64,000 nt of DNA. Source: Selaginella moellendorffii. Its lineage: Eukaryota; Plantae; Lycopodiophyta. The notes under the pieces are model-generated. The model saw only the letters and a program-made list of their open reading frames with translations. It searched no databases and was not told the DNA's origin. Below, one piece after another: positions 5,548 through 56,455 of the stretch. The translations under genes were made by a program, and so were the position numbers. How positions within the stretch are numbered: the first letter of the stretch is position 1; each line of letters opens with the position of its first letter. The DNA is taken from NCBI RefSeq assembly GCF_000143415.4, contig NW_003314316.1, positions 812,669 to 876,668 on the forward strand, read 5' to 3'.

Positions 5548-5962
5548 CAACAAACCTCTCTTGGCGGACGAACTTGTGCTTAGAGACAGCAACGCAAAGA
5601 GTCGCTGCCGAGTTTAGCTCGTGACACACACCCCACGCTCCTGCAGTCATTCAGGACCTGTAAATCGGAGCAAAAGAGTGTAAGTCCACAGCAGTACATG
5701 TAACTTTGAAGCGCGCTCACATAGTTCATGCATGCTCCCGTGTCCGCCAGTTGTCGAGCCAGCTTTACTCGTCACCAACATCCCATGATGTAGAACTACA
5801 AGTCGCATAGTTCAATCATCGGATCTCTATGAGGTGACAGCTCCCAGAATGCCGCGTGCTTTGTCCTGCTTCACCTTGTCCATAGTCTCCATGGCTACGT
5901 AGAGCGGAACATATATAAATATGGTGACTTGAGAGCGCTGTGACCTCGCTTTAGTGAGAAGA

Positions 5963-14024: not shown

Positions 14025-15828
14025 GGCCGCGGAGCTCTCCCCACGAAGAAAAAATGTGGTGCGTTCTAAAAAAATTAAAGCTCTATTTATAAAAGCCCTA
14101 ACTAAAATCCCCATCCGCCGTCCACGTGTCAGGTTCTCATCGTGTGGCTGAGGTTTGCTCCTGGGTCGCATGGAATTTCTTGCTCGTTTGGTGATCGGTA
14201 GTTTTCTAGCCAAATTTCTCCACCGCGCTGGTCTTTTGCCGAGATCTCGCCTCTGCGCTGACATAATCTCGACAATTAGCGTCGAATTTCGATGCGAATT
14301 CCACGGCGCTACATTCTAAAGGTATGGATTCTTCTTTAGACTTGATTCGATTAGGAAACCACCACTAGCGCTTGCGATTAAAATAAGCTCTGGGTGTCTT
14401 CCAGGCGCCTGAAAGGATATGCGGAAAACCATAGCTTTTCGCTCCAAAGGGTATTGTTTTTGATGATTTGGATTCTCTCGTCACAGAAAAATTCTAATGC
14501 CTGCCTTGCAGCTTTGGACGGTCCTTTTAAACAATGCAAACGTGCCTCGAGGGAGGAGAATCCAGAAAAAAATCTGGGGACTGACTCGTTCCTCCGAATA
14601 GAAATCCCGTGATTCACAAGGTGGAAGCTGGCCAATTGCTTTCGTTTCATAGTCTAAAAAACAGGTTTTCCACCACCATGAGATCAACATGATCGATCGA
14701 TCGCTCCGAGACAAGTTTCTTACGTCCACGAAGTGATCTTGGTCCTGAGATTTTTCGCCCAACAGTGATCGATTAAAGCGGTGATTGGATCCACTAGCCC
14801 GCTCTTTGAATCGCAGCTTAATGATCGTCCCTTTCATCCATTTCGTGCCGCGCTAGTCCCCACCAAGATCAAAAAATACACGAAAAAACTCCATTCTTGG
14901 TCTTGGCAGCACGTTAAGGACGAGAAAAAGTATAGTTTCGTGCCGGGCGACTGGGATCATTTTAAGTGAAATGGACGGACTGGATGCACAGGTGGATGAG
15001 TGGCATCAATCACGGAATATTACTGGTATTCAATTTGGAAGCTTCGCAAACATTTCATTTAGTTTTTTTTGAGTGGTCAGAATCCCGAGTGTGTTTGTTG
15101 CGTTGCTCTTGTCGCTCTCTACGAGAATCTAAGTCCCAAAAGCCATATAAGTAAAAACTCGATCTTACCAAAGTAAAAGTCTCATTTCTCCGCTGGATAA
15201 TTAGATGAATATTCTTTTCAGCAAGCATCTTAGATCAAACTTATATGCGTGCCTTAAGGCGTCATTCGGGGTTGCTTTAGCTTAAATCGCAAATGGGGGG
15301 CGAATCTTAAGGAATAATCCAGCGCCCATTGCCTCGAGATTCGGTGTGCCGGGGAAGGGATTCGATCGCGTGACTTGGGCAGCCGTTTGGGCCCCATTTT
15401 ACTAACCCACATTCACACGCATCCTCATTTTGGAGTAAAAATAAAAGGGCTGGAATGACAAATTGAGCTTGCCCTTTTTGTCGTCAAATGGGCGAAAAGG
15501 ATATTATTAGGGCTGTGCCCTGACACGTCAGAAATGTTGACGGTTTGATCTACGGCGAACAGGGAGCGAATCGTATGTCCGCAGTTGGCGAGATTTGAGC
15601 CGTCCGATGCACACGTATGATCTTCTGCCACGTGGCTGTTTTGGTTTTTTTTCGCGGCTTACCGCGGGTTAAATGACGTGTTAAAAGAGGGCGCATTGGA
15701 TACGACAAATCGACGGTGCAGAGAATTTACCTACCTTCACGTGAAGGTTACGAGGGTTTTCTTCTTCTACTATGATTGATAGAAGCGGGAGGAGGGAAGA
15801 ACAGGGAGAGAAAGAGAGAGAGAGAGCT

Positions 15829-15855
15829 ATGGCGATGGCGATGATGAGCGAATGA
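15829..15855 (+). promoter_or_regulatory. Short upstream ORF (MAMAMMSE*) in the presumed 5' leader of the MEI2-like gene
   Basis: ATGGCGATGGCGATGATGAGCGAATGA follows a GA-rich tract and precedes a CAG|GTAAG donor at ~15879. Confidence 0.5.
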
Positions 15856-16234
15856 CAAGAGCTAGCGCTCTCCCTCAGGTAAGGCGCTAGCTAGGTGATG
15901 CATTCCTGGAGGCGCTGAGGATCAGGTTATCCAGCTCCGCGAGATTATCTGTTGCGCGCTGCCGGATCAGATTTTTCGCAGCTCTGATTTGCCGCAAGAA
16001 GCCACAAATTTGTCCGGGATTCTGGAAATTTCGAGGGATTTCGTCCTGATCCTAGGAATTGGAGGCGAGAGCCGTGATGAGCTACATTTCCTGGCACCGC
16101 ATTGCCCAGCTGCTGTGAAATTGGGGGAGCTTGGCTGGGCGGCCATGGCGCACGACGACTTGTTCGTGGCGAAGCCATTCCGGGGATAGGAGGACATTTT
16201 CTGGGATGGCCTAACGCGGGCAAGGGGCTAGAAC

Positions 16235-19200
16235 ATGACGGAGTCCGCTGGAGTTCAAGTGGTTCAAGGCCGTCTAGGATCACTCTCTCTACATGGAAAT
16301 GGAAGCCCTGGATCGACCCTCTTCTTCAACGAGACGAGCTATTTGCCACACGAGGTTGGGACTTTCCCTCTATATTCCGTTGCGTGTTTGTTCTAACTTT
16401 CGTTTTGGTCATATGATTGTATCTAAGCAGATTGATTGGTCTTACGTGAACCACCAAGAATGGGAACCTCGCTCATTCCAAAAGTCCCACACGGATGAAT
16501 GGGTTCCACCGGCATCAACGACGACGCCTTGGAGTAGGAATGGTTTTAGTCCAGCGATGGCTTCCTCGCAGCTCAAAGGAGTGGCCGGGGAGTGCCTCGA
16601 CGTGAGCAACGATTCGAGCCTGTTTTCGAGCTCCCTCCCGTCCTTGGTAAAAGCCAAATGTTAGTACTTCTCTCCATTGGCTGCGCTTTCAAACTTCTGA
16701 CCGAACTTATCTTTGCTACAGTGACGATGTCAGAAAGTGATGTTGATCATTCACTTGGCGCTGAGGACGAAATTTTTGGGTCTCTCGAGGAGATGGAATC
16801 GCAAACTATTGGCAGGCTTCTTCCCGATGACGAGGAGGAGCTGCTGGCTGGAATCGCTGACGAACTTGACGTTGTACCATATAGTGCTGAGGACTTTGAA
16901 GATTACGATTTATTCAGTAGCGGGGGAGGACTTGAGATGGAAGGGGACTCGCATGAAAGCCTTCACTCTGGATCAGCTCATGGTACGATAGCTGGAGAGC
17001 ACCCCTATGGAGAACACCCCTCTCGAACTCTTTTTGTGCGAAATATCAACAGCAACGTTGAAGATAGCGAGCTCCGAGAACTTTTTGAGGTACTCGTGGT
17101 CCACCTTTGCATGGCGCCATTGACAACGTTCTATACGTTTCACAGATTTACGGGGACATTCGTACGTTATACACCGCTTGCAAACATCGTGGATTTGTAA
17201 TGATTTCCTACTATGATATACGATCTGCTAGAACTGCTATGCGTGTACTTCAAGGCAGGCTACTTCGGCGACGCAAGCTGGATATTCATTTTAGCATTCC
17301 AAAGGTTTGCTTGGTTTTCATATGCATAAGTCCGATTTGCGCTTCTCACTCACAGAGGTCGCTCGTTTACCAGGACAATCCCTCCGACAAGGATATCAAC
17401 CAAGGCACCCTTGTCGTCTTCAATCTTGATGCATCAGTCTCTGGTGAAGATCTTCGTAAAATATTTGGCCAGTATGGCGAAGTTAAGGAGGTAGATCTAG
17501 TAGCACATTCTGTTTCACGGGTGGAAGTCTCATATAACTGTTTTTCTGTCTCCAGATACGTGAAACACCTCACAAGAAGCACCACAAATTTATTGAATTC
17601 TACGACGTACGAGCCGCCGAGGCTGCACTGCGGGCATTGAATAGAAGCGATATTGCAGGGAAACGCATCAAACTGGAACCTAGCCGTCCCGGTGGTGTCC
17701 GAAGAAGGTTTGCGTTTGTGGTTTATAAATGGTTAACCTGTTCTACATGTAGCTCTTGTATTGGCAGTTTGATTCCTCGGCTTGGTCAAGAATTTGATCC
17801 TGAAGACGGATACCATTCACCATTGGCTTGGACGAACTCTCCTCCAGGTGAAGATGTTCCGTCACGATAGTTTCACCATTGACAGTGCTTAATTTGCAGC
17901 TGACTGGGGGACCATAAACGACACGCATGACTCTGACACAACATTTATCTCACCTAAGCCCCTGAGCTACAGGCCTTTCTCCCCAAAAGTCACGTCACAG
18001 GACGTATCTCCTCCTGTCAGAATAGGAATGGTTGACAACAGTCACGTTGTGCAGAACACAATGAGAAACCATCTGCTGGAACAGCAAGGACTTGGACAGC
18101 ATCACCCCCACTCCTTGCCAGAGTTTAGCAGCGGTCTGTATAGAAATGAACTCTTCAGCAGCTCCACAGCGGGCTTTTCAACAGTGGCTGCCCCTTTGAG
18201 GCCGATTGAAGGCTTTGAGACGAGGACGCTTTCTAGGACTACGAGTACCTTAAATGACAGCTCCACAACCTATGCAGGTACTTGATCGTCAAACTATAGC
18301 CAACTACTAAATCTTCTATTTTCTTTTTTGCAGTACACGCTACTGGTGTAGCATCCTCTCTTCAAAGATCTTCCAGCCTAAGCATCTCTCTGACCAGCCA
18401 GCCTATGATCTGGGGTTCTGGCAGTGGAGGGGCTTACAGTCAAGGTACTACTGCGAAAAGCTCGTCACCTTTAATGTGGCAGAGCCTATCGCCCGGCCAT
18501 CCATACAGTCAACGCTCCGCGGATGCGCATACTAATTTGTACAATTCAGCCTTCTCTCCACATAGTCACCAGCTTGGTTCATATTCTCGCGATCATTCTT
18601 TAGGGGACCGGCACCACAGTTATCTCCGAGAATCGCCAGAGATTTCGTCTTATCTCCAGTCGGGCTCCGTCAAAAGTCCAAACATTGGGAGCCTAGAGCA
18701 CCACGGTCCTTCGTCTCCAAACTTTGGTATGTTCCTGCCTCAACGGCTGTTTGGAAACTGCGGCTCTCCATTAGACGACCGACGCAACAGAAGAATGGAC
18801 AGCACTCCCGCTCAAGTGGACAACCGGAAGCAGTTTCAGCTGGATTTGGATCGTATTGTTGCTGGGGAGGACACTCGAACGACGCTGATGATTAAGAACA
18901 TACCAAACAAGTATGCGACTGTTCCTCTTTTCTTTCTGTTTTTTTATATCTGCACTGGGAGCTAAGTTTTGTTCTTTTTCTCTAGATACACTTCGAAGAT
19001 GTTACTGGCCGCGATTGACGAGCAGCACCGTGGAACGTATGATTTCATATACTTGCCCATTGATTTTAAGGTAAGCGAGTTTTCAGAAGGGGTTGTGCGA
19101 ACCACATCTAACCAGAGGCTTCAACAGAATAAGTGTAACGTCGGATACGCATTTATCAATATGCTGTCGCCTTCCTTGATCGTGTCCTTCTACCAGGTTC

Positions 19201-19723
19201 TCTGTGAAAAAGAGAGAGGAGATTTTCCTACGACTTGGTTCTAAAACTTGTCATTCTTTGTTTTCACAGACGTTCAATGGCAAGAAATGGGAGAAGTTTA
19301 ACAGCGAGAAGGTGGCATCGCTCGCGTACGCGCGGATCCAAGGCAAGGCCGCGCTGATCGCGCACTTCCAGAACTCGAGCCTCATGAACGAAGACAAGCG
19401 ATGCCGGCCGATAATCTTCCACTCGGACGGACCAAACGCAGGTGACCAGGTATCATTTCCTTGAGTGATTGATCCATTCATATCACACGCAAAAGGAAAT
19501 TAGCTCGAAACTCTCAAACTCTTCTAAATCTATCGCACAGGAGGCATTCCCGATTGGTGACAACGTCCGGAGTGGTCGATCTTCTGGACGGCTTGGAAAC
19601 CAAGCGGTGGAAGGCTTCTTCGCGAGACCCGGCGAGTTCTTGGGAGGAGAAGGTGTTGGCGATGGTAGCGACGAAGCGTTCCTCTCGCTGGAGACGCTCA
19701 ACATCTCATCGCCAGGGAATTGA
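16235..19723 (+). CDS. AML: MEI2-like (AML) RNA-binding protein with three RRMs
   Basis: SLFSSSLPS, YDLFSSGGGLEME, GEHPYGEHPSRTLFVRNINSNVED, DNPSDKDINQGTLVVFN, DTRTTLMIKNIPNKYT, WEKFNSEKVASLAYARIQG. The start exon (MTESAG...LPHE) is inferred. Confidence 0.95.
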
Positions 19724-20175
19724 CCATGTAAGTTTTCCTTTTTGGTAACCAACGCTACTATGGCTCCAGAGCTGCTACTACTACCAGAGACTAGAGAGAT
19801 CCTCTCTTCCAAGCGTGTATATAGCTTCAAAGGAAGTGATCCATGATAGAAGACAATGAAGAGAGACTGGATTGGATGTAAATAAAGTAAAATATGAATT
19901 TGCTTTGCTTTGTGGTTATTTAAGATTTTCTTACTACGTGCCAGTGATTTTTACTACGTGGCGAGGGCTCTTGGTTCGATTCGTGTCAGCACCAGTTCTT
20001 CTGGAGAAATCCAGATGGCTTCCATCCACTTTGGCGCTGAGCGCTACCCTCTCTCCTCTCTTTCTCTTTCTTGCAGCTCGATTCTTCTCTTCCAGGTTCG
20101 TAGCTCGCTCGCATTTCCAATCGATCGCGCTGCCGCATTGTAATCGATCTCTCTTGTCTAGGTTTTCTTGCGGCG

Positions 20176-22280
20176 ATGGCGTGCCTGGCCGTGGACAATG
20201 CGTGGTGCCATCGGTTCGAGGCCTCCATCCCCGAAGCTCGGAGCGATTTGAGCTCTCGGATTGCGTTTCCAGCGTCGCGCCAGAGGAGATTCCTCAAGGT
20301 AAGATCACGAAATTTTAGGCGCGCAAAGAGAGATAGATCCAGTCAGTCGATTCTAACGCATTGGAAGGATGAATGCAGTGTCGCAGTCGACCACGTCGAT
20401 CACAGTGGCTTCTCAAGGCCTCCGGGTCGGACGATAAGTCAAATTCCACTCCCAGTGGCACCAAGACTGCTGACAAGGAGGAAGAGAAAGCTTCGGATTC
20501 GCAAGAAAAGCAGGAGGAGCAGCCACAGGAGATCAAGCAAGAGATTGATTGGAAACAAGACGAGGATTTCAAGAAGTTCATGGGAAATCCTTCCATCGAG
20601 GCAGCGTTGAAGCTGGAGAAGAAGAGAGCCGAGCAAAGACTCAAGGAGCTAAACAACGAGCAGGGTGGCAACGTTTTCACGGGCCTGATACAAAACATAT
20701 CACGAAGTATCGTCCAAAGAGAAAAGGATAGGCTGGAGCAAGTCGAGCAGAAATTCAAGGCACTGGATCTTGGCAAGGTATGCGTTCCTTTTTTTTTCTC
20801 TCTTTGGCAGTTCCTTGCTCTTAAATGTGACTTTGCAGTTGAAAAGCTGCTTTGGATACGATACATTCTATGCGACCGATGTTCGCCGCTTTGGAGACGG
20901 TGGAATTTACATTGGAAACTTGAGAAAGCCAATCGATGAAGTGATCCCAGTATTGAAAGAAAGGCTGGCCAATGCCGCTGGAAGGGAAGTGACGATCTGG
21001 TTCATGGAAGAGGAGGATCGGGAAGGCAACGACATAAAAAAACAAGTGAGATTTTCCTTTGGATTCGTGGTGTTCTTACTTGTTCGTGCCAAACTCGTGT
21101 TTGTGATCCAGGTTTGTGTCGTTCAGCCCAAGGAGGAAATCGACCTTCAATATGAGCTTTCTTCACTGAACAATGTTGCGGGGTACATCAGCGCTTTGCT
21201 CCTCGGAGTCACAACTCTGGGAACAATCTCGCTGACGAGTGGTTTTTTCTTGACACCAAACGCCACCTTTGACGATTATATCGCTCGAGTTCTACCTCTT
21301 TTTGGTGGATTTATCACCATTCTCGGTGTCTCAGAGGTACGATTTATTTGGGCTATGGACTTGCGTTCCTATAAAACGTTTTTTCTTCTTTTGTTTCACA
21401 GGCTGCTACACGGCTTACTGCGAACAAGTATGGCGTTCGTCTCAGCCCATCATTTTTAATTCCTTCGACATGGACTGGATGCCTCGGCGTTGTAAACAAC
21501 TACGAGTCCACACTTCCCAGCAAGAAAGCACTCTTCGACATTGCTGCTGCTAGAATAACCAGTGCCTACGTTACGTCTTTTCTTCTTGCTGCAATTGCGT
21601 TTTACCTCGATCAAAGCCTCAACGGTGGTGATAACGCTCTGTAAGTTTTCTTTCCTCTGCTCTTTTCTTTCTATCTTCCTCGGTTGATTGGATCTGGTGT
21701 ACAGGTATATAAGGCCGCAGTTCTTCTTCAATAATCCTCTACTCTCCTTCATCCAGTACGTGACTGGGCCTTACACCGACGAACTTGGAAACGTTCTTCC
21801 TCAAGCAGTGCCAGGTCTTGGTGTTCCGGTCGATCCATTAGCGTTTGCTGGCCTCCTTGGTAAGAAGATGAAATCTCTCGTTTATTCTCCAAAACTGAGA
21901 GAGAGAAAACACTTACAGGAATCGTGGTGACATCCATGAATCTCCTGCCCTGCGGGAGACTCGAAGGTGGCCGAATCGCCCAAGCTCTCTACGGCAGGAG
22001 AGTGGCAAACATTCTCTCTTTCTTCACATCTCTAGCTCTCGGGGTTGGAGGCGTCACTGGGAGCGTGCTAAGCTTGACGTGGGGTTTCGTGGCTACGTTT
22101 TTCCGCGGCGGGGAGGAGCTCCCGGCTGAGGATGAGATCACACCAGTTGGAACGAGCCGCTACATCTGGGGGTACGCTCTTGCAGTGTTTTGTTTGCTCA
22201 CGCTCTTTCCAAACAGCGCTGGAACTTTTCCCAGTGTTCTTTACACCCCACCATTCTTTAGGGGCGATGGTGGTTTCTAA
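20176..22280 (+). CDS. EGY3: EGY3-like chloroplast M50/S2P pseudo-metalloprotease
   Basis: Transit-peptide-like N-terminus; DWKQDEDFKKFMGNPSIEAALKLEKKR, CFGYDTFYATDVRRFGDGGI, NLLPCGRLEGGRIAQA. Confidence 0.92.
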
Positions 22281-22381
22281 GCTAAAAAACAAATTTTGAT
22301 TATTAAAAGCCATAAACCAGCACCATCTGCTATATTCTCTCAGATGGATTTGTATACCTCTAGAATTATATCTTTAGAAAC

Positions 22382-22557
22382 ATACAGTTCACATATGCAG
22401 TCTTTCTTCTTTGTGGGTGTGTCTCTTCATTACTTTCATGGTATTGGAGCAATTGCCTTGTGGCTAATGCCTAGGATCAAAGAGCCAATTGCTCTGATAC
22501 CAAGAGTAGGGGAGAGGGACTTACACAAGGAGGAAGAAGTGTGTATCTCAACTATAT
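22382..22557 (+). ncRNA. Candidate MIRNA/hairpin-RNA precursor; 3' arm antisense to the LTR-retrotransposon tRNA-iMet PBS (miR845-like)
   Basis: Arms 22382-22455 and 22486-22557 pair over 72 positions by hand count (51 Watson-Crick, 12 G.U, 9 mismatches, one 2-nt bulge). GCTCTGATACCA at 22491-22502 is the reverse complement of TGGTATCAGAGC. Confidence 0.65.
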
Positions 22558-22631
22558 ATGGCAATCAATCATATGATGCTTTCTATCAAGTTATATTGAA
22601 GCACATAGTCACGCTATATACCTTAACAGTA

Positions 22632-23148
22632 ATGCATGGCCTCCAACACTGGTCCTGCAGCCCAGAGCCGAGGAGGAGATGGCAGACGGTACGTAGTCTC
22701 CATGATCAATTCTATTTTGGTGTGAAGAAATTGAATGAAGCTTGATTTTTATGACTCAGAGGGAAGGAGCCACGACACGAAATGGCTCTTTCTTCTCAGG
22801 CAGTCTCTACTCCCATAGAAACTCTGCCTCTGCAGCGAGTTCTGATAGTGATCCCCACCTCAAACAATTCAAGGGCTTCCAGGATGTAAGTCCACTTTTG
22901 CACTTTATACACATCTTCCTGTAAGTTTGTCTCTTGTGTTCTTTCAACTTTGAGACGATCATTCACAATTGAATGCTTTTCTTACAGTGGTTTGATCGCC
23001 ACAAGAAAACTAGAAAGTTACAGAGCTTTGCAGTTTGCAGACCTAGTTGGGCTGTTTCTTGGAAAGTTTAAAGTTTGGAGCTTTTTTCTTTGAGTTCTTT
23101 TCACCGACCCATTGACTAAAACAAGTCTTTTTGGCAGTCAATGGTCGC
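22632..23148 (+). pseudogene. Deleted tandem copy of the downstream CHCH (twin Cx9C) gene, including introns and 3' flank
   Basis: Colinear similarity to 23605-24355, e.g. SDSDPHLKQFKGFQD vs GSDPCLKQFKAFQD, and a shared ttggaaagtttaaagtttgga. The start exon and the 3-Cys exon are missing. Confidence 0.85.
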
Positions 23149-23187
23149 TCCCGCATTCGAATCCCGTTTGTGTTTCTAAGTTGTTCC

Positions 23188-23318
23188 TGCTTTTCTTGCT
23201 CTTAAATGTGATTTGCAGTTGAAAAGCTGTGAAAAAGCCAATCGATGAAGTGCTTCCAACATTGAAAGAAAGGCTGGGTCTGGAAGAAAGGTGACGATTC
23301 TGGTTCATGGAACATAAA
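23188..23318 (+). pseudogene. Internally deleted fragment of EGY3 intron 2/exon 3
   Basis: ttgctcttaaatgtga-tttgcagttgaaaagctg...gccaatcgatgaagtg...ttgaaagaaaggctgg...tggttcatggaa matches 20815-21040. Confidence 0.85.
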
Positions 23319-23459
23319 AAAGAATCTTCCCTCAGTTCTTTAATAAAAGGCATATTCGCAATAGCGCATTTTCTTAAGACCAAAGCAAAAGGGGACTATA
23401 AATAGTGCCTGGTATGTTCCAGAAGCTTTCTTAGGGCTTTTTGTGTCAAGGAGAAAGCG

Positions 23460-24191
23460 ATGGCACGTAGCAGAGGCGGAGGCGGCAAGACTCGCACTTT
23501 CAAGGCGCCAGCAAAATCGGCGGCCAAGGCGCCCGCTCCAGGTATACAGTCAATCGCAACCGGGTTTGATCGCATCTCATCTCGATCTCCTTGAGCAGCT
23601 TACCATGCACCGCCTCCAGCACCGGTCCCGCAGCCCAGCGCCGGGGGCATAGGAGGAGGAATCGCGGCCACGATGGTAGACGGTACGTATCCCCAGATCG
23701 ATTCTACTTCAGTTTGTTTGTGAAGAGGATTGAAAGGAGGCTTGGACTTTTCGTTTGTTTTACCAGGACTTGTGTTTGGAGCCGGCAACGCTGTGGCTCA
23801 CCGGGCTGCAGACGCGATCATGGGTCCGCGTGTTGTGCAGCACGAAATGACGCCTTCTTCTCAGGCTGCCAGTACTCCCGCAGAAGCTCTGCCTCAGCCA
23901 ACAAGCTCTGGTAGTGATCCATGCCTCAAGCAATTCAAAGCGTTCCAGGATGTAAGTCTTACACATAATTCTCGTTTGCACTTTCATATTTTTATAAGAT
24001 CATCGTCTTTTCTTGTGTTTTAACAGTGCATTGCGGGCAATCCTGATGACATATCGAAGTGTCAGTTTTACATTGACATGCTGGGAGAATGCCGCAGGAC
24101 CGCTGGTTCAAGTAAGTCTGGTTCTTCCAAAAGTTCACAATTCAATGCTGTTCTTGCAGTGGTTCGATCGCCAGAGGGAGTGCCAAACTAG
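23460..24191 (+). CDS. CHCHD2/At12Cys-like mitochondrial twin Cx9C protein
   Basis: GLVFGAGNAVAHRAADAIMGPR and CLKQFKAFQDC...CQFYIDMLGEC (Cx9C twice); 5 exons. Confidence 0.9.
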
Positions 24192-24523
24192 AAAGTTTCA
24201 GAGTTTTGCAGAGCTAGTTGGGACAAGGCGGCATGTTTCTTGGAAAGTTTAAAGTTTGGAAGTAAAGGAGCTATTTCTTTGTTCTTTCTACCTTTGACTG
24301 CCCTCGACTCGTTGACTGAAACTAACCAGGAACACGGTCTTTATGGCAGTCAACGATGCTGCTACCGGGAAGCTTCGTCTTGTTCGTGTTTAGGGCTGGC
24401 GTGGCTGGGCCAAACCGTTGTTCCTGTGTCCTCTGCACACGCTGTTCGAGGTTGTTGATGAGCTCCCCCTCCCCGTGAGCCTTTCAAAGAGAATTTAGGG
24501 TTCTTGGCGCGCTCAATGCAAGC

Positions 24524-26170
24524 ATGGTTCTCTGTCGAGAAGAAGAAGAAGAAGAAGAAGGGGAAGAGGAGGAGGAGGAAGATTTTGCCGATGAACACAC
24601 TGGCATTCTCTTCCCCAGAGAGAAAGAAATCGAAAATGCAACAGCGCCAGTGAATTTGTGTTTGGGATTGGTGGAAAAGGAGAAAATCCAGATTGAAGGA
24701 GGAGGAGGAGGAGATGATGCAAGAAATTCTCTCTTCCAGATTGGAATTCCAGCGATTCGCGCCGAGCTCGCCATGCAATTCCGCCTGGGATGCCCCATCA
24801 TGGCCATGAATCTCATCTGGTTCGCCAAATTCCTCGCCACCACGCTCTTCCTGGGCCGGCTGGGCGGCGTGGAGCTCGCGGGAGGCGCCCCAGCTCTCAC
24901 CTTCGCCAATGTCACCGGCTACTCGATCCTCCTCGGCCTCGCCACTGGAATGGAGCCGATTTGCAGCCAGGCATTCGGCGCCGGGCGGATGGATCTCATG
25001 GCCTCAGCGCTCCAAAATGCGATCCTCATGTTGCTCCTGGCGTGCATTCCAATCGCCCTCGCCTGGCTCTACAGCGTTGAGAGATTCTTGATCTTCTTGG
25101 GCCAAGATCCATCCCTGGCCCGCGCCTCAGCAAGATTCTTGAAATTTCTCCTCCCGGATCTGTTCCTCCAGGCCGTGATCACTCCCCTGCGGATCTTCCT
25201 GCGCTGCCAGAGCGACACACTGCCAATGACCATCGCCTTCACTGCCGGGATCCTCCTCCACATTGGCCTCGGATTCCTGCTCGCCATGGACCTGCGCGGC
25301 GCTGGGATTGCTCTGGCGATGGGCATTGGCGATCTTTTCACGCTCGCGCTACTTTTAAGTCTCGTCCTCGCCAAGAGCAGAGCCTCTTCTTCCAAGAACC
25401 CTAAAATCAAGAACACGAAGAACACGAGGAGAAAGAGATGGAAGCCACTGATCAAACTGGCACTGCCCTCGTGCGCCATGGTCTGTCTTGAGTGGTGGAG
25501 CTACGAGGCCATCGTTCTTCTTGCCGGGCTGCTCCAGGATCCAGAAATCTCCGTCCCAGCTGCCGCGATCGTGCTGAATTTGGACGCAATCCTCTACGCG
25601 CTCCAGATCACGCTCGCCTCCTGCACCGCCACCCGAATCGGCCACGAGCTGGGCGCGAATTCGCCCTCCTCTGCCCGGACCGCGGCAATCGCATCGCTGC
25701 TCGCAAGCCTGGCAATGGGATTCGTGACCTTCGCCTCTCTGGCGGTGTTGCGATCGCTGTGGGGGCGGCTCTTCACGGCCGATCCAGCGATTGTGCGCAG
25801 CGTAAGGCGATCGATGCCGGTGGCGGGCGCGATCGAGCTCGCCAATTTCCCGCTGCTGGTGCTGTGCGGGATCTTGCGTGGGAGCGCGAGGCCAGCGGCG
25901 GGGGCGGTGGCGAGCCTGGGATCGTTCTACCTCATTGGGCTACCGTGTGGAGTGGCGCTGGGATTTGGGGCGGGGCTGGGCCTGGTGGGGCTGTGGCTGG
26001 GATTGCTAGCGGCGGTGGTGGCGTGTGTGGCGCTCACGGGGATGGTTGTTCTTGGCACGGATTGGAAGGAGATGGCCATGGCTTCCCAGCTGCAAATCCG
26101 ATCTTGGGACACTCCTAGCGAAGTGTGGCATTCTAACGATCCTGATGGAAAAGAAATGGATGAAATTTAA
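24524..26170 (+). CDS. Intronless MATE/DTX efflux transporter
   Basis: FLGRLGGVELAGG, FANVTGYSILLGLATGMEPICSQAFGA, LALPSCAMVCLEWWSYE, TRIGHELGAN, GILRGSARP; many TM segments; poly-Glu N-terminus. Confidence 0.95.
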   Translation: MVLCREEEEEEEGEEEEEEDFADEHTGILFPREKEIENATAPVNLCLGLVEKEKIQIEGGGGGDDARNSLFQIGIPAIRAELAMQFRLGCPIMAMNLIWFAKFLATTLFLGRLGGVELAGGAPALTFANVTGYSILLGLATGMEPICSQAFGAGRMDLMASALQNAILMLLLACIPIALAWLYSVERFLIFLGQDPSLARASARFLKFLLPDLFLQAVITPLRIFLRCQSDTLPMTIAFTAGILLHIGLGFLLAMDLRGAGIALAMGIGDLFTLALLLSLVLAKSRASSSKNPKIKNTKNTRRKRWKPLIKLALPSCAMVCLEWWSYEAIVLLAGLLQDPEISVPAAAIVLNLDAILYALQITLASCTATRIGHELGANSPSSARTAAIASLLASLAMGFVTFASLAVLRSLWGRLFTADPAIVRSVRRSMPVAGAIELANFPLLVLCGILRGSARPAAGAVASLGSFYLIGLPCGVALGFGAGLGLVGLWLGLLAAVVACVALTGMVVLGTDWKEMAMASQLQIRSWDTPSEVWHSNDPDGKEMDEI

Positions 26171-26235
26171 ATCCTAGAATATTCTATATTCTGAGCATAT
26201 TCGCTATGATTAAATTGAACTTTACCGCCTTTTTG

Positions 26236-27876
26236 CTACTTACCTTTACCATCTTTGTTATAACCACTATAATCTTTTTCTTGATCATCAGAGCAAATAT
26301 TGGCTAACAGAGAATATAGTGAAGCACATTCTGGATTGAGACTCACCCCAGACTTGGCAGCCTCAGATCCTCTTGTGGAATCTTTGTGGAGTTTGCAGCC
26401 ACCCAACAAGGAAGTCCACTCCACCTCATCAGGGATAAAGGGCATATTCCAGACTAGATCTTGGGCATCTCGCAAATGCCCAGCTCTACTCAACAAATCC
26501 ACCATGCAACCATAGTGCTCCTTGAGAGGCCTCAGCCCATGATCCCCAGCCATCGATCTAAAGCAGTCCCAACCGTCCGATACCATGCCGCCGTGGCTGC
26601 ATCCCAGCAGCACGCAGCACAGGGAGATCTCGTTGGGCCGGATGCCGTCCAGTACCATCGTACGGAACACATCCAACGCTCCCTGGAAGCGCCCGGCCCT
26701 GGCGTACGCTCCAACCAGGCACGTCCACGCCACCACGTTCCGTACGCCCATGCCGGCAAAGAAGCGCTGGGCGTCTTCCAGATTCCCAGCCAGCGCATAT
26801 GCCCCTAGCATCGCGGCCTCGGATGCCGTGTCGTGGTACGGCATCTCGCTGAAGATCCTCCGGCATTCATAGATATTCCTACCGTACGCGTGGGCTGTGA
26901 GCAGTGCCGTCCAAGAGAGGATGTCGCGCTCGGGCATGAGCTGGAAGAGGCGCGCGGTTTTCCGCGCGTCCCCAAGCCGGGAATATCCGCCTAGCATGGT
27001 GTTCCACGTGACGAGATTCCTGGCCGGCATCGCGTGGAAATAACGATTGGCCTCGTCAGCGCTGCTGGCAAAGCACACATCCAGTACGATCGTCCACGTC
27101 ACCACGTCGTACAGTGGCATAGCACGGAACACCGCCATGGCGTCCTTGAGCCGGTGGTGTCCGTACTGTGAATATGCCCCCAGGAGAGTGCTCCATGTGA
27201 TGAGATTCCTCTCTGGCGTGGCGTGAAAGAGCGCTATCGTCGAGTTTAAATCGCCGGATCTCATGGAAGAAGAGAGTGCCGCGTTCCAGGCCACCACGCT
27301 CCACTGTGGCATTCGATCAAACACAAGCCTGGCTCGAGCAAAATTTCCTTCTTGGGTATTTGCCGAGAGGAGGATGATCCACGAAACAATCTCTCGCTCT
27401 GGGATTCGATCGAAGAGATCTTCCAGCTCGCGGATCCGGCCAAACTGGTCGTAGGCCGCCAGCATCGTGTTCCAGGAGATGACGCTGGGGAATCGAATGC
27501 CGTCGAAAATAGACTCCGCGAGATCCAGATCCCCCGCCCTGGCCGCCGCCGCCACTGCCGCGGTGGAGGAAACCACATCCAATTGGGGCGTCCTGGCGAG
27601 GATCGAGAGCGCACGAGAGAGATCTCTGCTGCTGGCGAGGCACGAGAGGAGGATCTGGCGCCAGGAGAAGGGATTCCTGGCGGGCATGGAGTGAAAGAGG
27701 GCGAGCGCATCGCGGATGCTGGAGCAGGCGCCATACATCTGGATGAGGAGATTGGAGAGAAAGATGCCGTCGGTGGACATGAATCGTGATTGCAGCACCT
27801 GGGAGTGGACATTGCGAGCATCGGCAATGTGGCGCACGGATTTGATCAGCCGGACGCACTCATCCACACACCGCAT
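26236..27876 (-). CDS. PLS-class PPR protein with E domain, no DYW
   Basis: Tandem ~31-35 aa repeats (MPxRxxVSWxxLLxAY); HYGCMVDLLSRAGHL..A..L...MPFIPDEVEWTSLLGGC E motif. Confidence 0.93.
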   Translation of the reverse strand: MRCVDECVRLIKSVRHIADARNVHSQVLQSRFMSTDGIFLSNLLIQMYGACSSIRDALALFHSMPARNPFSWRQILLSCLASSRDLSRALSILARTPQLDVVSSTAAVAAAARAGDLDLAESIFDGIRFPSVISWNTMLAAYDQFGRIRELEDLFDRIPEREIVSWIILLSANTQEGNFARARLVFDRMPQWSVVAWNAALSSSMRSGDLNSTIALFHATPERNLITWSTLLGAYSQYGHHRLKDAMAVFRAMPLYDVVTWTIVLDVCFASSADEANRYFHAMPARNLVTWNTMLGGYSRLGDARKTARLFQLMPERDILSWTALLTAHAYGRNIYECRRIFSEMPYHDTASEAAMLGAYALAGNLEDAQRFFAGMGVRNVVAWTCLVGAYARAGRFQGALDVFRTMVLDGIRPNEISLCCVLLGCSHGGMVSDGWDCFRSMAGDHGLRPLKEHYGCMVDLLSRAGHLRDAQDLVWNMPFIPDEVEWTSLLGGCKLHKDSTRGSEAAKSGVSLNPECASLYSLLANICSDDQEKDYSGYNKDGKGK

Positions 27877-28035
27877 CCAAGAACCCTAAAAACAGAGTAA
27901 CATTTTGGCGGGATCTCTTAAGAATATACTTTTAGATGCTAAAATCATATTAAAACTTGGGGGTATAGACAGACTCCAACAGGGGAGATGGAAGAAGATA
28001 TATCATAGTGATTGAGAGCAAAAAGGGGATTTTTT

Positions 28036-28474
28036 TCACGGGCATTTGGGCTCTCCCTCGTCGTTGCGGATGGCATCGTAGCACGGGCACTCTTTCTTGC
28101 TCGCTTTTGGGCCATTTGGAACGCAAAAGCACTTGCTGCAGCAGATGTTACACATCTTATTGCACATCTTGGGCTTCCACGAGTTAGAGCATCGGTACTT
28201 GCACTTTCCTCCACAATCTGCGAGGGAGAAACAAAGACCCAGTCACTCTACTCGATCCAACCGACAAAAACTGGAAGCTAGAAACTAAAAGCAGTGAAGG
28301 ATGTCTCACCGTATCCAGTCAACTCTCTGCTGCCAAGAACCACATTGCCATTCTGCAACGAAACAAGAGATTGTCAAAACACGAACTCAATCAGGCAATG
28401 CAGGTGGAGCTCACCTCGGCAATCACAAACATGAGCAGGACGAGAGATGCTAGCCACTTCAAAGCCAGAGCCAT
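28036..28474 (-). CDS. GASA: GASA/Snakin cysteine-rich secreted peptide, 3 exons (absent from the ORF track)
   Basis: Spliced product MALALKWLASLVLLMFVIAE-NGNVVLGSRELTGY-DCGGKCKYRCSNSWKPKMCNKMCNICCSKCFCVPNGPKASKKECPCYDAIRNDEGEPKCP*; 12-Cys GASA pattern ending in KCP. Confidence 0.93.
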
Positions 28475-29003
28475 TTTGCTCGAACTCCTCCTTTCTCTCA
28501 CGAAGAAACACACCTGAGGACTCTGCGAGAAGAAACAATGAATGCTCTAAGTGGAAGAGAAGAGTGGCGTTTTATAGTCAGGAATTTACCTCCCTGTGGA
28601 AGAATCGCGGCAGCTCAGGTCCCCCACCGTGTGAAGCTAGCTGTATAGTCAGCGTAGAATTAAATCTAAAGATTGTCTGTCTGCCATGCCATTGCCAGCC
28701 GGCTTTGCGATGGAAGGCTGCTCCATTTAGATATCTTTGTACCATATATCTATCTCGTATAGGCGCCTCTTTGTCTGCCAGATCCTGTAAAGGAAACAAC
28801 TATGATCAAACTCTTTTTATCTTTCGTCTCTTCGTTTGGGTTAACTCTATCAGACTAAGAAATGTCGGTTTACCTCGCAAGACGAATCACGTGTTGATGT
28901 CACGCCAAACGAGAGCTTGCCAGCACGAAGATATAGGTGCTTCCATCGCGACGAGCTTATCGGCGATTCAGTGTTCTCTCCTATATGATACAGAGTGAGC
29001 TCG

Positions 29004-29810
29004 ATGAAAATGGCAGCGAAAGATCCTTACAGAAGCCACATTCGTGGAGATGCCGAGAAGACCACCTACTGGAGACATGGAGAACCTCCGTGTTATGACA
29101 ACAGCGCCTTTGAGGAAGGTAGGAGCAAGGTAAGTCAGCCGCTAGATTGTGAGAGACGAGGTAACGGGAGCTCGCTCACCTTGCTCGAGTTCAATTGGAT
29201 TGATGCAGGTATGGCCGAGTGGATCACTGGAAGAGATCGTTCAAAACCTCGTCAAGACGTGGGAGATGGAGATGAGCCACAAATGCCATGTCGAGGACGT
29301 CAAAACAGTCGATCATCAGCTCTTCACACTCGCGGTGAATGGTAGGCAAGAACTTCACAGCATCATCTTCTTCTGAGTTTCTTCTATGCAGGAAGAACAT
29401 CAAAGTCAGTCGACGAAGTTGTGAGAACCGGAACATATAACATCTTACTTCAATCCGAAGCTCCCTGTGCATACTATGACTCCTCCAAAGAAAACTTTGA
29501 ATCCTCACACCATACCTTCCACCACGCCTTCAACAATAAGTTTCCATGGGAAGTTCTTCAAGTGTACTCCGGACCTCCTGTTGTTGTCTTCAAGTGGAGG
29601 CACTGGGGAAGAATGAAAGGAGAATTTCGAGGTCATGCTGCTACAGGGGAATTAGTCGAGATCATCGGAGTTGCTGTTGCTACTGTGAATAGCGAGCTCA
29701 AGCTCACGAGTGTTGAAGTTTACTTCGATCAGGAGCAGTTCCTTAAGAAACTGTGCAAAGGAAAGAAATCTTCGCTAGAAAATGTAAACGCAAATGCGTC
29801 ACTTAAGTGA
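29004..29810 (+). CDS. Pathogen-related protein (NTF2/SnoaL-like fold family), 3 exons
   Basis: YRS...WRHGEPP.Y, GSLEEIVQNLVKTWEMEMSHK, FPWEVLQVYSGPPVVVFKWRHWG. Confidence 0.88.
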
Positions 29811-29904
29811 AAGCATCCTTGGAAATCTTCTGTAAATCTGAATAGATGTCATGAGACTTTTACCTGTATCTGATTTCTCTGCCTTTTGGAAGGCTGCGAA
29901 CATA

Positions 29905-31557
29905 TCAATGCTCAAAAAGTCCCTTTTTCGTCCAGCTCGGGGTACGTAGTAGCCTTCCTTTCGCGATTACATACTTGACGTCCAGACTGCTTTTATCCAG
30001 CACTAGAACGTCTCCGTCGCTTCCAGGACTTAAATGACCTGCCAAAAACGTTTGCATATATACAAAATATATACAAATATGGAAGCTAAAGTACCTTTGT
30101 GAGAAAGTGAAAGAAACTTGGCTGGATTCTTTGTGCTTAACGAGATGGCATTTTCAACTTTCCACTCGGCTTCTCGAATTAGCCTCCTGATTGTGTTTAG
30201 ATTTGCAAGAGGCGAGGCAACCCCATACTTGACAAGGTTGCCTTTGCTGTCAAAGACTGGAAGAGAACCAAATGCGTCAGAAGAAATGGAAACAGAAGTG
30301 GTAGGCACATCTCTGTCCGCCCAGTCTTTAAGAGCGTCATAAGATGCAGTCTCGCCTTCTTGATCGGAGGTAAAGTCGACACGGCCTCCAGCTTTTACCC
30401 ACACTTCCGCAGCCTATAAAAAGGTTTGAGAACTTAAAAGCTACAAGAAAAGTATACCTTCACTAGTTCTGGTCCCCGATGAGAAACATGAGTTGGGATC
30501 ATCTGCGTGAGAGGTATAGCTTCTCTACTGGCGTTGAAAACAGACCAAAGAGGGTCGAGCAGCGAAGAAGCACTGCCAACGTGAAAGTGAACAATTCCAG
30601 CTTTTCCCGAGAGCATCCCTCCAACTCTTGCGTCAGAAACAAGGTGTAAAAGTTCCTGCGTGAAACCACGTCAGAAACGATGCGAAAAATTGTAGCTAAT
30701 TTTACCTCGGTGCTCGGCCAGCTGCCACGATGATCGCTGATGGCAATTTCTCCGGCGCCAATTACTTCGTTGATAAGCTGAAGATCTCTTACTAAGTTGC
30801 CTGATAGATGTTTTGGTCGTATCTAAGCTGTACAAATGAAAACAGAATGGACAAACCTGTCAAAGTTGGAGATGGTACTCTATAGCAGCCACTCCACATA
30901 TACGCTGTTATTCCTTCCTCTTGCAAGGCTTTGGACTTTGTTCTTAAGTTCTCAAGGCTACAAGGAGCAAAAGAGTTATAATCCAGAAGACAAAGGCAAA
31001 AAAAAATAAAATTGAAAAGAAAGGAGCATTTGCTCGAGAAAGAAAAAAAACGGAGAAGAGATGAGCGACTCATACCTTCTCGACACACAATCGGTGCCTA
31101 GGACTCCCACAAGCGTAGTGATGCCGGCTTCTAGAATTTCTGCTAGCCCAGCTTCCGGAGTTCTACTGGAAGGTCCCATCTCTCCACCACCACCAGTGAT
31201 ATGGACGTGCATATCAATCAAACCTGGAACGACAATGTCGCCCTCCACATCGATCACCTCGAGAAGAGGAATCCCTGTGAGGTTGATCCATGGAAACTGC
31301 TGCTCCGAGAACACAGCTAGAACGGATCCTCCACCCAGCAGAATGTGAGCCTTTCCAATCGGCTCTGGCGTGTACACCAATCCATTCTTGACCAGAATCA
31401 TCGTGGCTTCTCGTTCCTCGCCGCCGATCTGGCCCGCTACCGCGACATCCCACTCCACAATCCCCGGATCGAGAGACTTACACGATGATCCAGATGACAT
31501 AAGCGGCAAGAATGCCGCCAGCAGCGCTAGCTCCAAGAAAATCAGAGGTCCAGCCAT
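29905..31557 (-). CDS. iadA: Isoaspartyl dipeptidase (beta-aspartyl peptidase, bacterial IadA-like) with N-terminal signal peptide, multi-exon
   Basis: PGLIDMHVHITGGGGEMGPSSRTPE, GITTLVGVLGTD, GEIAISDHR, HFHVG, IPTHV, SISSDAFGSLPVFD, KNPAKFL...KGHLSPGSDGDVLVL, KGLFEH*. Confidence 0.92.
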
Positions 31558-31739
31558 TGTCCCGAGAACCCTAGCCCATGGAAGTGGGGCATCTTAAAAA
31601 TGCAAGATATCTCATATACAAATTGCCAGCAATGTTTGGAAGGGTTCTTGAATAAACATTACAGCTTAGATTTAGTCGTTCATTTTATTTGATAGCATTT
31701 ACTGCTACTTTTTTGGTTTGCTTAAGCAAACCTGTAGAC

Positions 31740-32050
31740 TGTAGTGAATATATTTAGAATATATTTGAATATTTTAGGATATTCTATGATTTAACGGTTG
31801 TTATTCATTTAGATTAATCTTGTATTTATAATTTATAAATATGTTTATAATTTATAAACTTTCTTAAACCCTTTCTAGTATATTCTTTTTATTCTATCAT
31901 CTAATGGTTGATATACAATAAAATTAATCTTGTGTTTATAAATTACAAACATGTTAATAATTATAAATTTTATTTGAGAAATCAGATTAATAAGTAATAA
32001 TAAAACTACTATTAAGCAAACCAAGCATTGCTACATGCAATGCATAGCAA
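31740..32050 (+). repeat. AT-rich dispersed repeat, copy 1 (probable non-autonomous TE terminus)
   Basis: Colinear with 34501-34785; both start TGTAGTG(A/G)ATATA and share ttattctatcatctaatggttgatat. Confidence 0.75.
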
Positions 32051-33229
32051 TTTATTTTTTACTTTGAACTCAATCACAACTTTATAGTTGTATGGTCTTT
32101 TTAGTATCTTCTTACGAATATTCATCTGATTATAAGATACAGCCATTGGATTCAACATGGGAGGGACATCATGATAAATATTAAGTATGAACATTAGCTT
32201 GAATGTGTTGAAATACCTCACTGGAGGGAATTTTACAATATGCACCTCTCTATACTGGATTAGCAAGGAGCATAGTGTTAGCCAGGAAATTCCAAATTTG
32301 CTAAATGGAGTATAGTGTTTTAGTCTCTAGGATTTTATATTAATTTAGAGGACTTTACTGAATTTTCTATTCTTTCACTTCACTTGTAAGTTCTTTTCTC
32401 CATTTATTGCATTTTCTTTTATTCCACAAAAGTTGCATCCTTATGCAAATAGTGAGAAACTATTGAAAAGATATGGATAAATATTATTATATAAATGTAA
32501 TGGAAGATATTAAATAGAATGACGTTATTGATGAATAAAATATTAATTATATTTAGAAAAAGAATCTGAGGTAGAGATGATGAAATATTACTTATTTATT
32601 ATTTAATTCTAATAATGTATTATAAATTTAAATTACTTAAATTTTTACTCAAAAATATTTATTACCTACCATTTGTTTTAATGATGAATTATCAATTTAT
32701 TCATTATATTTGTACCTAATTAAGTTACCCAAACAAAGTCTAAAAAGAATATTAATATAAATAATATACATAAGTATGTGTCAATACCAAAGGGGATATG
32801 TATCATGTCAATGCTGATTTCTTAGTTGAAAATTAGATTCAAAATAATATTAATACTAAATTTTTAAACTTTCTCTTGATAAAAAAGTGAAATATTTTCA
32901 TCTTGATGTGTAAAAAATGTAAAACTTCTAGACAAATAAAATAAAATAATAAAAATGACATATTAAATAACATGTTAAAAGTTGTAAAATATAAGTGGAT
33001 AAGCTAATTTAAATAGTTTTTAATTGTAAATTTAAAAAATTGTTATGACTTTAAAATTAGATTTAAAGCTAATAAAATTAGTATATTAATTTGATATATC
33101 TAATGAGGAACCAAATCTTATGTATATACTTTGGATAAGAAAGTGTACCATAGAAGTGTTTCTAATTTAAAATTTATCATTAAAATGTCAAAATGTCAAA
33201 GTAAGTTACGTGCAATAAATGGTGTGGCC

Positions 33230-34400
33230 CTGGTAGTGGAGTTGGGAATGCTAGTGAAGTTTGCTGTATTATATAGCAAAGAGCCATGCCCTTATTAAAG
33301 CATTTGAGGATCTCCTATTACATTTTTAGTGATGCATTCTAGCATTACATTTTAGCATTCTGGAGAGTCGACAGCTTCTAGCTTCAGGGATTGGAGGAAT
33401 TAATTCCAGGGATTGTTGAGTTCTAGTTCCAAGCATATTAGTTTTCTAGCCATATCTGGGATTCAAGTAAGCTCTTATATAGGAGCTTGGCACTCAAGAT
33501 GAAACTCAAGAGGAAGGGAGAACATTAGAGAGCTAGCAGAATCAGTTTCAAGGAAGAAACTGAGGAATAAACATGCTCCTAACTGGACAAGAGGAGAAGC
33601 CATAGCTTTGATTGAGCTCAAAGTATGCAGAGTGGACAGTTATGATTCAAGGAAACTTGCCTTTGAATGCTTGCCAACAGCAGTTTGCAAAGAAGATACT
33701 GTTGAGAATCTAGCCACAAAGCTCACTTGGCAAGCCTCCAATGAGCTAGTTCCTGCTCAAGTCCGTGAAGATGAGATGGCTGCTGTTGTTCTTGATGCCA
33801 AGGTTTCAACTTAACCTGTTTCCAGAGACATCGAGCATGACCAGTGTTGAGAACAAACTTGGTGGAACAGAGCTTGAGAGCATGTCATTTTCTATGGAGC
33901 AAGTTTGGGAACTTAACAAACTTAGCAAGAGGTTCCAGCAAACTTTGACAGAGTGCTCAAAGATTGGAGCTTTTTTCGTCCCTCTCATATCCTTTCTCTA
34001 CAGCCTGGAAGAGAATCCACTTTCTCATGCTCACTGAAAGGCTGCCATGAAATCAGTTATTATAGAGGTCAAGGGCCAGCAAACTTGGAGTGAACAAGCT
34101 ACCTGGAATTGTTCCTTCAAGCTTGTTGCCAGGCATGCATAAGACTTCCACTCCTATAGATTTGGAGTGTGGAAGAGGAATGCTGTGGAAGAGCTTGTTT
34201 CTATCCACACTAAGAAACTTGAGGCTATAACTTCGACAAAGATTTGTTGGTAGTGAACCGGTGAAAGTGTTTTGTGCTACTCAAAGTTCCTCCAGCCCAG
34301 AGTGGAGGCCAAACTCTTGAGAAATCTCACTGCCAATACTGTTCTCAAAGAGCAAAAGCTGCCAGTCTCACTGCTCAGAGTGGAAGTGATGTAGAACACA
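33230..34400 (-). pseudogene. LRR receptor-like kinase pseudogene fragment
   Basis: Minus strand reads SEISQEFGLHSGLEEL*VAQNTFTGSLPTNLC...LSVDRNKL..SIP...PGNKLEGTIPGSLF..LLALDLYNN*FHGSL and LVMLDVSGNRLS*: plant LRR consensus with in-frame stops. Confidence 0.8.
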
Positions 34401-34500: not shown

Positions 34501-34785
34501 TGTAGTGGATATACCTAGAATATATTTGAATATTCTGAGATATTTTATAATCTAACGGTCATTATTCAATTATATTAATCTTGTATTTATAATATATAAA
34601 CTTCCCTAAAAACTTTCTAGCATATTCTATTTTATTCTATCATCTAATGGTTGATATGTAATAAGATTGATCTTATGTTTATAAATTATAAAGATGTTTA
34701 TAATTATAAACTTCCATATAATAAATAAGAACAAACACTACTATTAAACAAACTAAATGTTGCTGTATGGAACATGTAGTAAATT
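34501..34785 (+). repeat. AT-rich dispersed repeat, copy 2; a degenerate inverted partial copy lies at ~35110-35350
   Basis: See copy 1. ttaatttataaacacaaaatta at ~35115 is close to the reverse complement of an internal motif of the repeat. Confidence 0.7.
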
Positions 34786-56406: not shown

Positions 56407-56455
56407 CTACTAGGTTTGAGTTACATAGAACGCCAATGGGTTGAGGCTGGCGGGC

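Follow-up and report, generated by a model that had tools for sequence, protein, structure and literature searches.

The window analysed here, a 64-kb stretch of the Selaginella moellendorffii genome, is identical over positions 14356–34000 to GL377620.1:827,024–848,838 (record position = window position + 812,668). The gene order around the feature of interest is EGY3, a hairpin, a CHCH pseudogene, an EGY3 fragment, CHCH and MATE, the protein of the last being 100% identical to XP_002982802.2. EGY3, a gene for a chloroplast protease, encodes EGY3_M and Peptidase_M50 domains and ends with a stop codon at 22278–22280; its last exon and 3′ UTR occupy 21918–22354 on the + strand, as delimited by the splice acceptor, the read depth and the end of an RNA contig. 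The hairpin, a 176-nt fold-back at 22382–22557 (+; GL377620.1:835,050–835,225) defined with RNAfold and by drawing of the stem, starts 101 nt past the EGY3 stop on the same strand. Further downstream, 22632–23079 holds a tandem duplicate of the CHCH-domain gene in a decayed state (functional copy at ∼23460–24260) and 23192–23312 is a decayed fragment of the EGY3 exon at 20811–21009. These pieces carry deletions and retain 79–95% identity to their originals, which places the hairpin within old segmental-duplication and pseudogene DNA.

Elsewhere in the window, 56441–58696 and 26236–27876 are PPR genes, each intact and made up of a single exon, and one of them encodes E and DYW deaminase domains; such genes are typical of the expansion of RNA-editing factors in Selaginella. 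An AT-rich region (GC 0.34) at 31740–31949 and 34501–34692 holds a four-copy family of 100-nt direct repeats, arranged as two pairs 2.7 kb apart, which may be the ends of an unclassified noncoding element. The ORF at 4339–5547 is not a called gene.

An earlier note on this DNA had reported a fold-back about 100 nt past the EGY3 stop and on the same strand, and RNAfold bears this out. The minimum free energy (MFE) of the + strand RNA of 22382–22557 is -73.9 kcal/mol, compared with a shuffle mean of -45.2 kcal/mol (z = -6.42, with 0 of 200 shuffles as good), while the − strand reaches -49.5 kcal/mol (z = -3.56). The fold thus exceeds chance, and its bias to the + strand is real. Global alignment of the 5′ arm (22382–22458, +) with the 3′ arm (22484–22557, +) gives 52 Watson–Crick pairs, 11 G·U pairs, two A·C mismatches, nine transversion mismatches, a 2-nt gap and one end gap. 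The hand count in the note, with 51 Watson–Crick pairs, 12 G·U pairs and nine mismatches, was right about the two A·C mismatches and the 2-nt bulge and slightly off elsewhere, the mismatches totalling 11. The stem of the MFE structure consists of 47 Watson–Crick and 11 G·U pairs, and the 2-nt gap corresponds to a CA at 22437–22438 that is bulged out. The terminal loop region (22459–22483, +) is ∼25 nt long, with a small 3-bp side stem added in the MFE structure, and weak complementarity between the arms extends outwards to ∼22377 and ∼22562.

The content of the arms points to a retrotransposon. The 3′ arm carries GCTCTGATACCA at 22491–22502 (+), which is the exact complement of the tRNA-iMet primer-binding site (PBS), as had been claimed for this arm; it occurs once in the 64-kb window, is the same in both haplotypes and contains GCUCUGAUACCA, complementary to the tRNA-iMet PBS. 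In the 5′ arm, TTTCA is followed by the PBS-like dodecamer TGGTATTGGAGC (22439–22450, +), which is two transitions, at 22445 and 22446, from the tRNA-iMet PBS. Position 22445 pairs with 22496 as U·G and 22446 pairs with 22495 as G·U, in agreement with the proposal in the note that this arm is an LTR end plus PBS, both changes of which are compatible with G·U pairing. With ...TTACTTTCA followed by TGGTATTGGAGC, the arm has the ...CA of an LTR directly abutting a PBS that differs by the two transitions, as an LTR-end/PBS junction should. In the arm alignment, the 5′ arm is the sense copy (∼55 nt of LTR end, the CA terminus, the degenerate PBS and 7–8 nt of leader) and the 3′ arm is an antisense copy of the same junction without the CA, hence the 2-nt gap. 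Derived changes are therefore found in both arms: the 3′ arm has a perfect PBS complement and has lost the CA, and the 5′ arm has kept the CA and has two changes in the PBS. Both arms end at an equal distance from the PBS (∼55–60 nt), so that the copied unit must have been short and not two whole LTRs. The 64-kb window is without a retroelement ORF, an LTR pair or a second iMet PBS, and the window and both haplotype loci together hold no other iMet PBS.

A metagenome scan with TACTYTCA plus the canonical PBS as the query found ...TTACTTTCA followed by the canonical TGGTATCAGAGC in 28 plant contigs from at least seven LTR families, and one of these contigs (L013) encodes an RVT_2 Copia-type reverse transcriptase. 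As plant contigs share the junction and one has RVT_2, the 5′ arm looks like a genuine Copia-type LTR-end/PBS junction. Its likeness to these foreign families ends with the searched 20-mer, except for a possible shared TCTTTGTGG, and an exact 20-mer from the 3′ arm gave zero metagenome matches. In L013 the junction occurs twice on one strand (1582–1601 and 5929–5948), around the Copia-type RVT_2 ORF; L021, L024 and L028 also carry a doubled junction, with a spacing of 4.3–4.7 kb across such contigs, which hints at a small Copia family arranged in tandem or with three LTRs. One candidate for the source family, a match in a viral collection with the PBS followed by AATTGG, was rejected because the sequence upstream of its PBS is unrelated to the hairpin. 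This match lies in the IMG/VR contig IMGVR_UViG_3300031853_000110 (L003, 11685–11702), which is filed as viral; the tRNA-iMet PBS there may belong to a retroelement or to a sequence of pararetrovirus type.

A likeness to tRNA was also seen in the loop (22462–22490), where AGGATCAAA is one transition from the tRNA-iMet T-arm AGGATCGAA and precedes the acceptor/CCA complement, as the order within the tRNA requires. This recalls the tRNA-iMet origin proposed for MIR845 and MIR1511; miR845 and miR1511 have both been tied to tRNA-iMet (PMC5605234). A tRNA origin of the loop was dropped, the likeness not being significant (shuffling p = 0.044, genomic background 5%).

Transcription of the region was followed by mapping reads of two raw stranded RNA-seq runs (2026, ∼12% of each), one RNA-like contig run and one run of unknown kind. 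Stranded reads set in at the acceptor of the last EGY3 exon (21918) and cover this exon at a depth of 10–50, in the + strand RNA orientation only. Both EGY3 alleles are expressed, with SNPs in the RNA-seq reads at 21932, 22049, 22146, 22187 and 22217 at 30–60%. The depth is 0.33 in the 22308–22358 bin and zero on both strands over 22359–23400, and the assembled transcript contig of run X1 stops at ∼22354, putting the end of the EGY3 mRNA ∼28 nt before the hairpin, which consequently lies outside the mature 3′ UTR. In 14 RNA-like runs from six studies, 0.44–0.49 of the words sampled from 22000–22700 were present, approximately the stretch up to ∼22343, against 0.75–1.00 in DNA-like runs. The + strand transcript that the reading in the note calls for was thus looked for and not seen: the mRNA stops before the hairpin, and with zero depth over 22359–22562 in the two stranded poly(A) RNA-seq runs no precursor was seen. 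Primary miRNA transcripts have a short lifetime, so the zero poly(A) depth weakens a microRNA reading without killing it. From its position we infer that the hairpin lies in the zone of expected Pol II read-through past the cleavage site. A spurious ORF crosses the hairpin, and a protein search with it found no recorded match.

The sign of selection offered in the note was an excess of G·U over A·C pairs, given as 12:2 and taken to reflect selection on a + strand RNA stem. On recounting, 11 transitions keep the + strand pair and two break it (binomial p = 0.022). As a local control, the substitutions in the adjacent pseudogene copies, read on the same strand as the hairpin, were polarised by comparison with the functional paralogues; they comprise 14 C>T, 16 G>A, six A>G and six T>C changes, that is 20 of the pair-keeping and 22 of the pair-breaking types (Fisher test of hairpin against control, p = 0.026). 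These strand-symmetric substitutions rule out strand-biased mutation as the cause of the G·U excess. The ratio of transitions to transversions is 42:29 in the control and the same between the hairpin arms (13:9), where the nine transversion mismatches have not been purged. When 13 transitions and nine transversions were placed randomly on a perfect ancestor, the simulated difference in energy between the strands reached the observed -24.4 kcal/mol in 2.1% of cases one-sided and 2.7% two-sided. The G·U excess is real but modest, with a p value of ∼0.02–0.03 from a single post hoc test, and it matches the trace expected of selection for a + strand RNA stem, making it a modest hint of such selection. 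The bias itself and the symmetry of local mutation therefore uphold the earlier argument, and the size of the p value and the neutral-rate divergence described below hold it back.

The second haplotype allows the age and the decay of the hairpin to be gauged. Both haplotype loci were found by a homology search with the MATE protein; GL377616.1 (locus L002) is the allelic region and has the hairpin at the allelic site (∼255,610–255,770), so the insertion is old and fixed. The haplotype alignment shows that a 25-nt segment of the 5′ arm (22410–22434, +) is absent in GL377616.1. Besides this deletion, the haplotypes differ at 9 of 151 aligned positions within the hairpin (6%), compared with ∼6% in the flanking pseudogene and intergenic DNA (22600–22999) and 1–1.5% in the EGY3 and CHCH exons, and the match with the flanking noncoding DNA indicates that the hairpin, taken as one unit, drifts as fast as the neutral DNA around it. 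When 20200–24600 is compared with 5400–10200 of L002, the EGY3–CHCH intergenic stretch likewise shows ∼6% difference and many indels. Between the two arms of the hairpin, 22 of 74 positions are different, so that the inverted repeat must be several times older than the haplotype split. RNA of the GL377616.1 allele still folds (-56.5 kcal/mol, z = -4.7), with ∼24 nt of the 3′ arm bulging directly below the PBS duplex, and as modelled it would present Dicer with a strongly altered substrate. The upper duplex (22430–22455 with 22484–22510) has no haplotype substitutions against ∼2.9 expected (P ∼ 0.05), which is suggestive only.

A search with the last EGY3 exon gave best homologues of at most 77–80% protein identity. 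Neither of the two homologue loci with longer downstream sequence, L005 (197 nt past the stop) and L006 (∼900 nt), contains a PBS or an inverted repeat, and in the downstream region of L006 there is no PBS even when two mismatches are allowed; a third, L004, covers merely 48 nt past the stop. The missing hairpin in L005 and L006 speaks against an ancient origin at the EGY3 locus, as far as relatives this distant can tell. The suggestion that the defence might be ancient has therefore lost ground on three counts, namely the 25-nt stem deletion in the other haplotype, the neutral-rate divergence and the nearest EGY3 homologues examined, which are without the hairpin.

The note had compared the hairpin with miR845. 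The best Rfam matches are indeed MIR845_1 (RF00901; 24.0 bits against a gathering threshold of 81, E = 0.025 in a 1.4-kb search) and MIR1511 (RF03728; 22.9 bits against a gathering threshold of 100), both in the correct register and carried by the PBS cores only; the whole 64-kb window gave no microRNA-family match at the Rfam gathering level. In the cmscan alignment to MIR845 the two PBS cores and generic pairing are conserved, and homology of the precursor stops at the core. What survives of the comparison is the inverted LTR-end/PBS architecture with the PBS complement in the 3′ arm; assignment to the family fails at the Rfam thresholds. As in Arabidopsis miR845a/b, the 3′ arm carries GCUCUGAUACCA and then bases complementary to the LTR end; unlike MIR845, the lycophyte locus is of independent origin and its mature RNA is only hypothetical.

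In Arabidopsis pollen, miR845 is directed against the PBSs of Gypsy and Copia elements and triggers easiRNAs (PMC7197481, citing Borges et al. 2018). The miR1511/miR5139/miR8155 group of angiosperms and gymnosperms has a PBS-complementary core and is associated with the silencing of LTR retrotransposons (PMC5846777); the likeness lies in the PBS-complementary small RNAs, the PBS complement here being in a hairpin arm. In the portion covered of the supplements of PMC5569507, PBS-complementary small RNAs of many ferns and of Isoetes are catalogued under miR845 and miR1511, so that the idea of PBS-targeting small RNAs is not new for seed-free plants. Many of the miR1511-group entries in that portion end in ...CUGGCUCUGAUACCA, which marks them as 3′ fragments of tRNA-iMet itself, whereas the core of the hairpin is flanked on both sides by non-tRNA sequence. 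The main text of the same paper treats one fern miR1511 candidate as a possible siRNA or proto-miRNA. For S. moellendorffii, the family count of the miR1511 group appears to be 0, given our reading of the species columns in the same portion, and the hairpin arms are absent among the candidates listed there, a weak negative given that the supplements are homology-based (PMC5569507). Smo-miR845.2500 (11 reads), the sole such S. moellendorffii entry among those listed, is identical to miR845 entries of two fern samples (Aca and Cfo) and is not encoded in the 64-kb window; from its sequence it looks like cross-sample carry-over. Substrings of both arms gave no match in a full-text literature search over ∼8.4 million papers.

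The structure can also be set against general rules for plant microRNAs. A hypothetical 21-nt guide at 22490–22510 (+) would form a duplex with 22430–22451 that has one mismatch and a 2-nt asymmetric bulge. The rules of Axtell and Meyers from 2018 reportedly ask for a fold-back of less than 300 nt and a duplex with no more than five mismatched positions, no more than three of them in asymmetric bulges, and the predicted duplex in its 176-nt fold-back lies within these limits as far as structure prediction goes. The same rules are said to call for precise cutting of a 20–24-nt miRNA together with its star, leaving 3′ overhangs of 2 nt and seen in replicate small-RNA libraries. Orthologues of DCL1, DCL3 and DCL4 are present in every land plant examined, including S. 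moellendorffii, which makes dicing possible in this species, and land plants have had the RDR6 clade since ancient times (PMC5569507). In S. moellendorffii, the annotated genome is without DCL2 and no clear 24-nt peak is seen in the species (PMC5569507); lacking DCL2, an Arabidopsis-like easiRNA cascade triggered by 22-nt RNAs is doubtful.

Taken together, these data lead us to regard the hairpin as probably a young, weakly constrained or unconstrained, single-locus proto-MIRNA-type hairpin derived from a transposable element, and not a conserved canonical microRNA gene. It would have arisen through inverted duplication of a Ty1/Copia-type 5′ junction at a single locus, each arm receiving ∼55 nt of LTR end, the tRNA-iMet PBS and ∼7 nt of leader. 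Pol II that continues beyond the EGY3 poly(A) site would produce the hairpin as + strand RNA, and this read-through RNA is predicted to fold into a stem of ∼72 positions. If a Dicer-like enzyme then cut within the upper 33 bp, which are well paired, 21-nt RNAs of the 3′ arm bearing the PBS complement might be freed and, by analogy with miR845 and miR1511, these could guide Argonaute to the PBS of LTR retrotransposons. Like a proto-MIRNA of the inverted-duplication model, the hairpin has long arms with extended similarity to the putative target, is lineage-specific and polymorphic and shows no conservation across species; this model predicts heterogeneous siRNAs, and the S. moellendorffii hairpin differs in that the mature mRNA of its host gene does not include it, its place being in the read-through zone.

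That no transcript was seen, that divergence runs at the neutral rate and that one allele has lost a large piece of the stem all argue for a young proto-MIRNA at most. Three observations bear against this reading: the 11:2 bias set beside 20:22 in the control, since selection on a + strand stem would leave such a bias; the PBS complement of the 3′ arm, which is intact while the changes in the 5′ arm are wobble-compatible; and, as a suggestion only, the substitution-free upper duplex (0 against ∼2.9 expected, P ∼ 0.05). We consider it possible, leaning slightly against, that small RNAs of some kind are made from the hairpin in some tissue. Precise miRNA-like excision seems unlikely and a selected anti-retrotransposon function more doubtful still.

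The main rival is a genuine, selected and independently evolved microRNA gene of the miR845/miR1511 kind, from which DCL1 would excise a discrete 21–22-nt guide of the 3′ arm; AGO would then slice or block at the tRNA-iMet PBS of LTR retrotransposons, and pararetroviruses might be targets as well. We judge this to be unlikely. The G·U bias with its strand-symmetric local control, the perfect 3′-arm PBS complement in both haplotypes, a predicted duplex within the structural limits for plant miRNAs, best Rfam matches in the right register to MIR845_1 and MIR1511 and the presence of DCL1, DCL3 and DCL4 together with the ancient RDR6 clade (PMC5569507) all fit such a gene. They are opposed by the zero transcript over the hairpin, the altered Dicer substrate expected from the 25-nt stem deletion in the other allele, divergence at the neutral rate and, more weakly, the absence of the arms among the S. 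moellendorffii candidates listed in the homology-based supplements of PMC5569507, in the portion covered. In addition, the missing CA puts the 3′ arm out of the LTR-end register beyond 13 nt around the PBS, which leaves a short stretch complementary to a typical target. In its boldest form, this reading would make the locus an independent lycophyte counterpart of miR845, a guardian hairpin transcribed by EGY3 read-through and diced to PBS-antisense 21-mers that hit retrotransposon RNAs, with the G·U bias and the intact 3′-arm PBS complement as the footprint of selection; we hold this to be distinctly doubtful.

It is rather improbable that the hairpin is instead a copy of a dispersed fold-back family, MITE-like or TRIM-derived, with many genomic copies and hence without locus-specific meaning. 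A single copy was found in the 64-kb window and a single one in the 21-kb allelic locus, and the arm ends are without a clear target-site duplication. Least probable of all, and by our estimate very much so, is a cis-acting RNA or DNA structure that, by blocking or pausing Pol II, helps to form the EGY3 3′ end or to terminate transcription: its position 28 nt past the mRNA end on the same strand would suit this role, yet the EGY3 homologues L005 and L006 are without a downstream inverted repeat, the retrotransposon origin and PBS content would be left unexplained and, to our knowledge, hairpin-type Pol II terminators are not an established mechanism in plants.

The young proto-MIRNA-type hairpin that we favour would be informative whether or not it is processed. 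If it is, a lycophyte would have a PBS-targeting hairpin with a defined genomic locus, none of which we found described in the searchable literature, and it would provide an example of a small-RNA precursor located in the read-through zone behind the poly(A) site of a host gene. It would also imply that retrotransposon defence by means of a primer-site copy held in a hairpin arose repeatedly across the vascular plants. If it is not processed, the locus gives a clear view of the starting material that can become a MIR845-type gene, and its two alleles show the speed at which such a hairpin decays.
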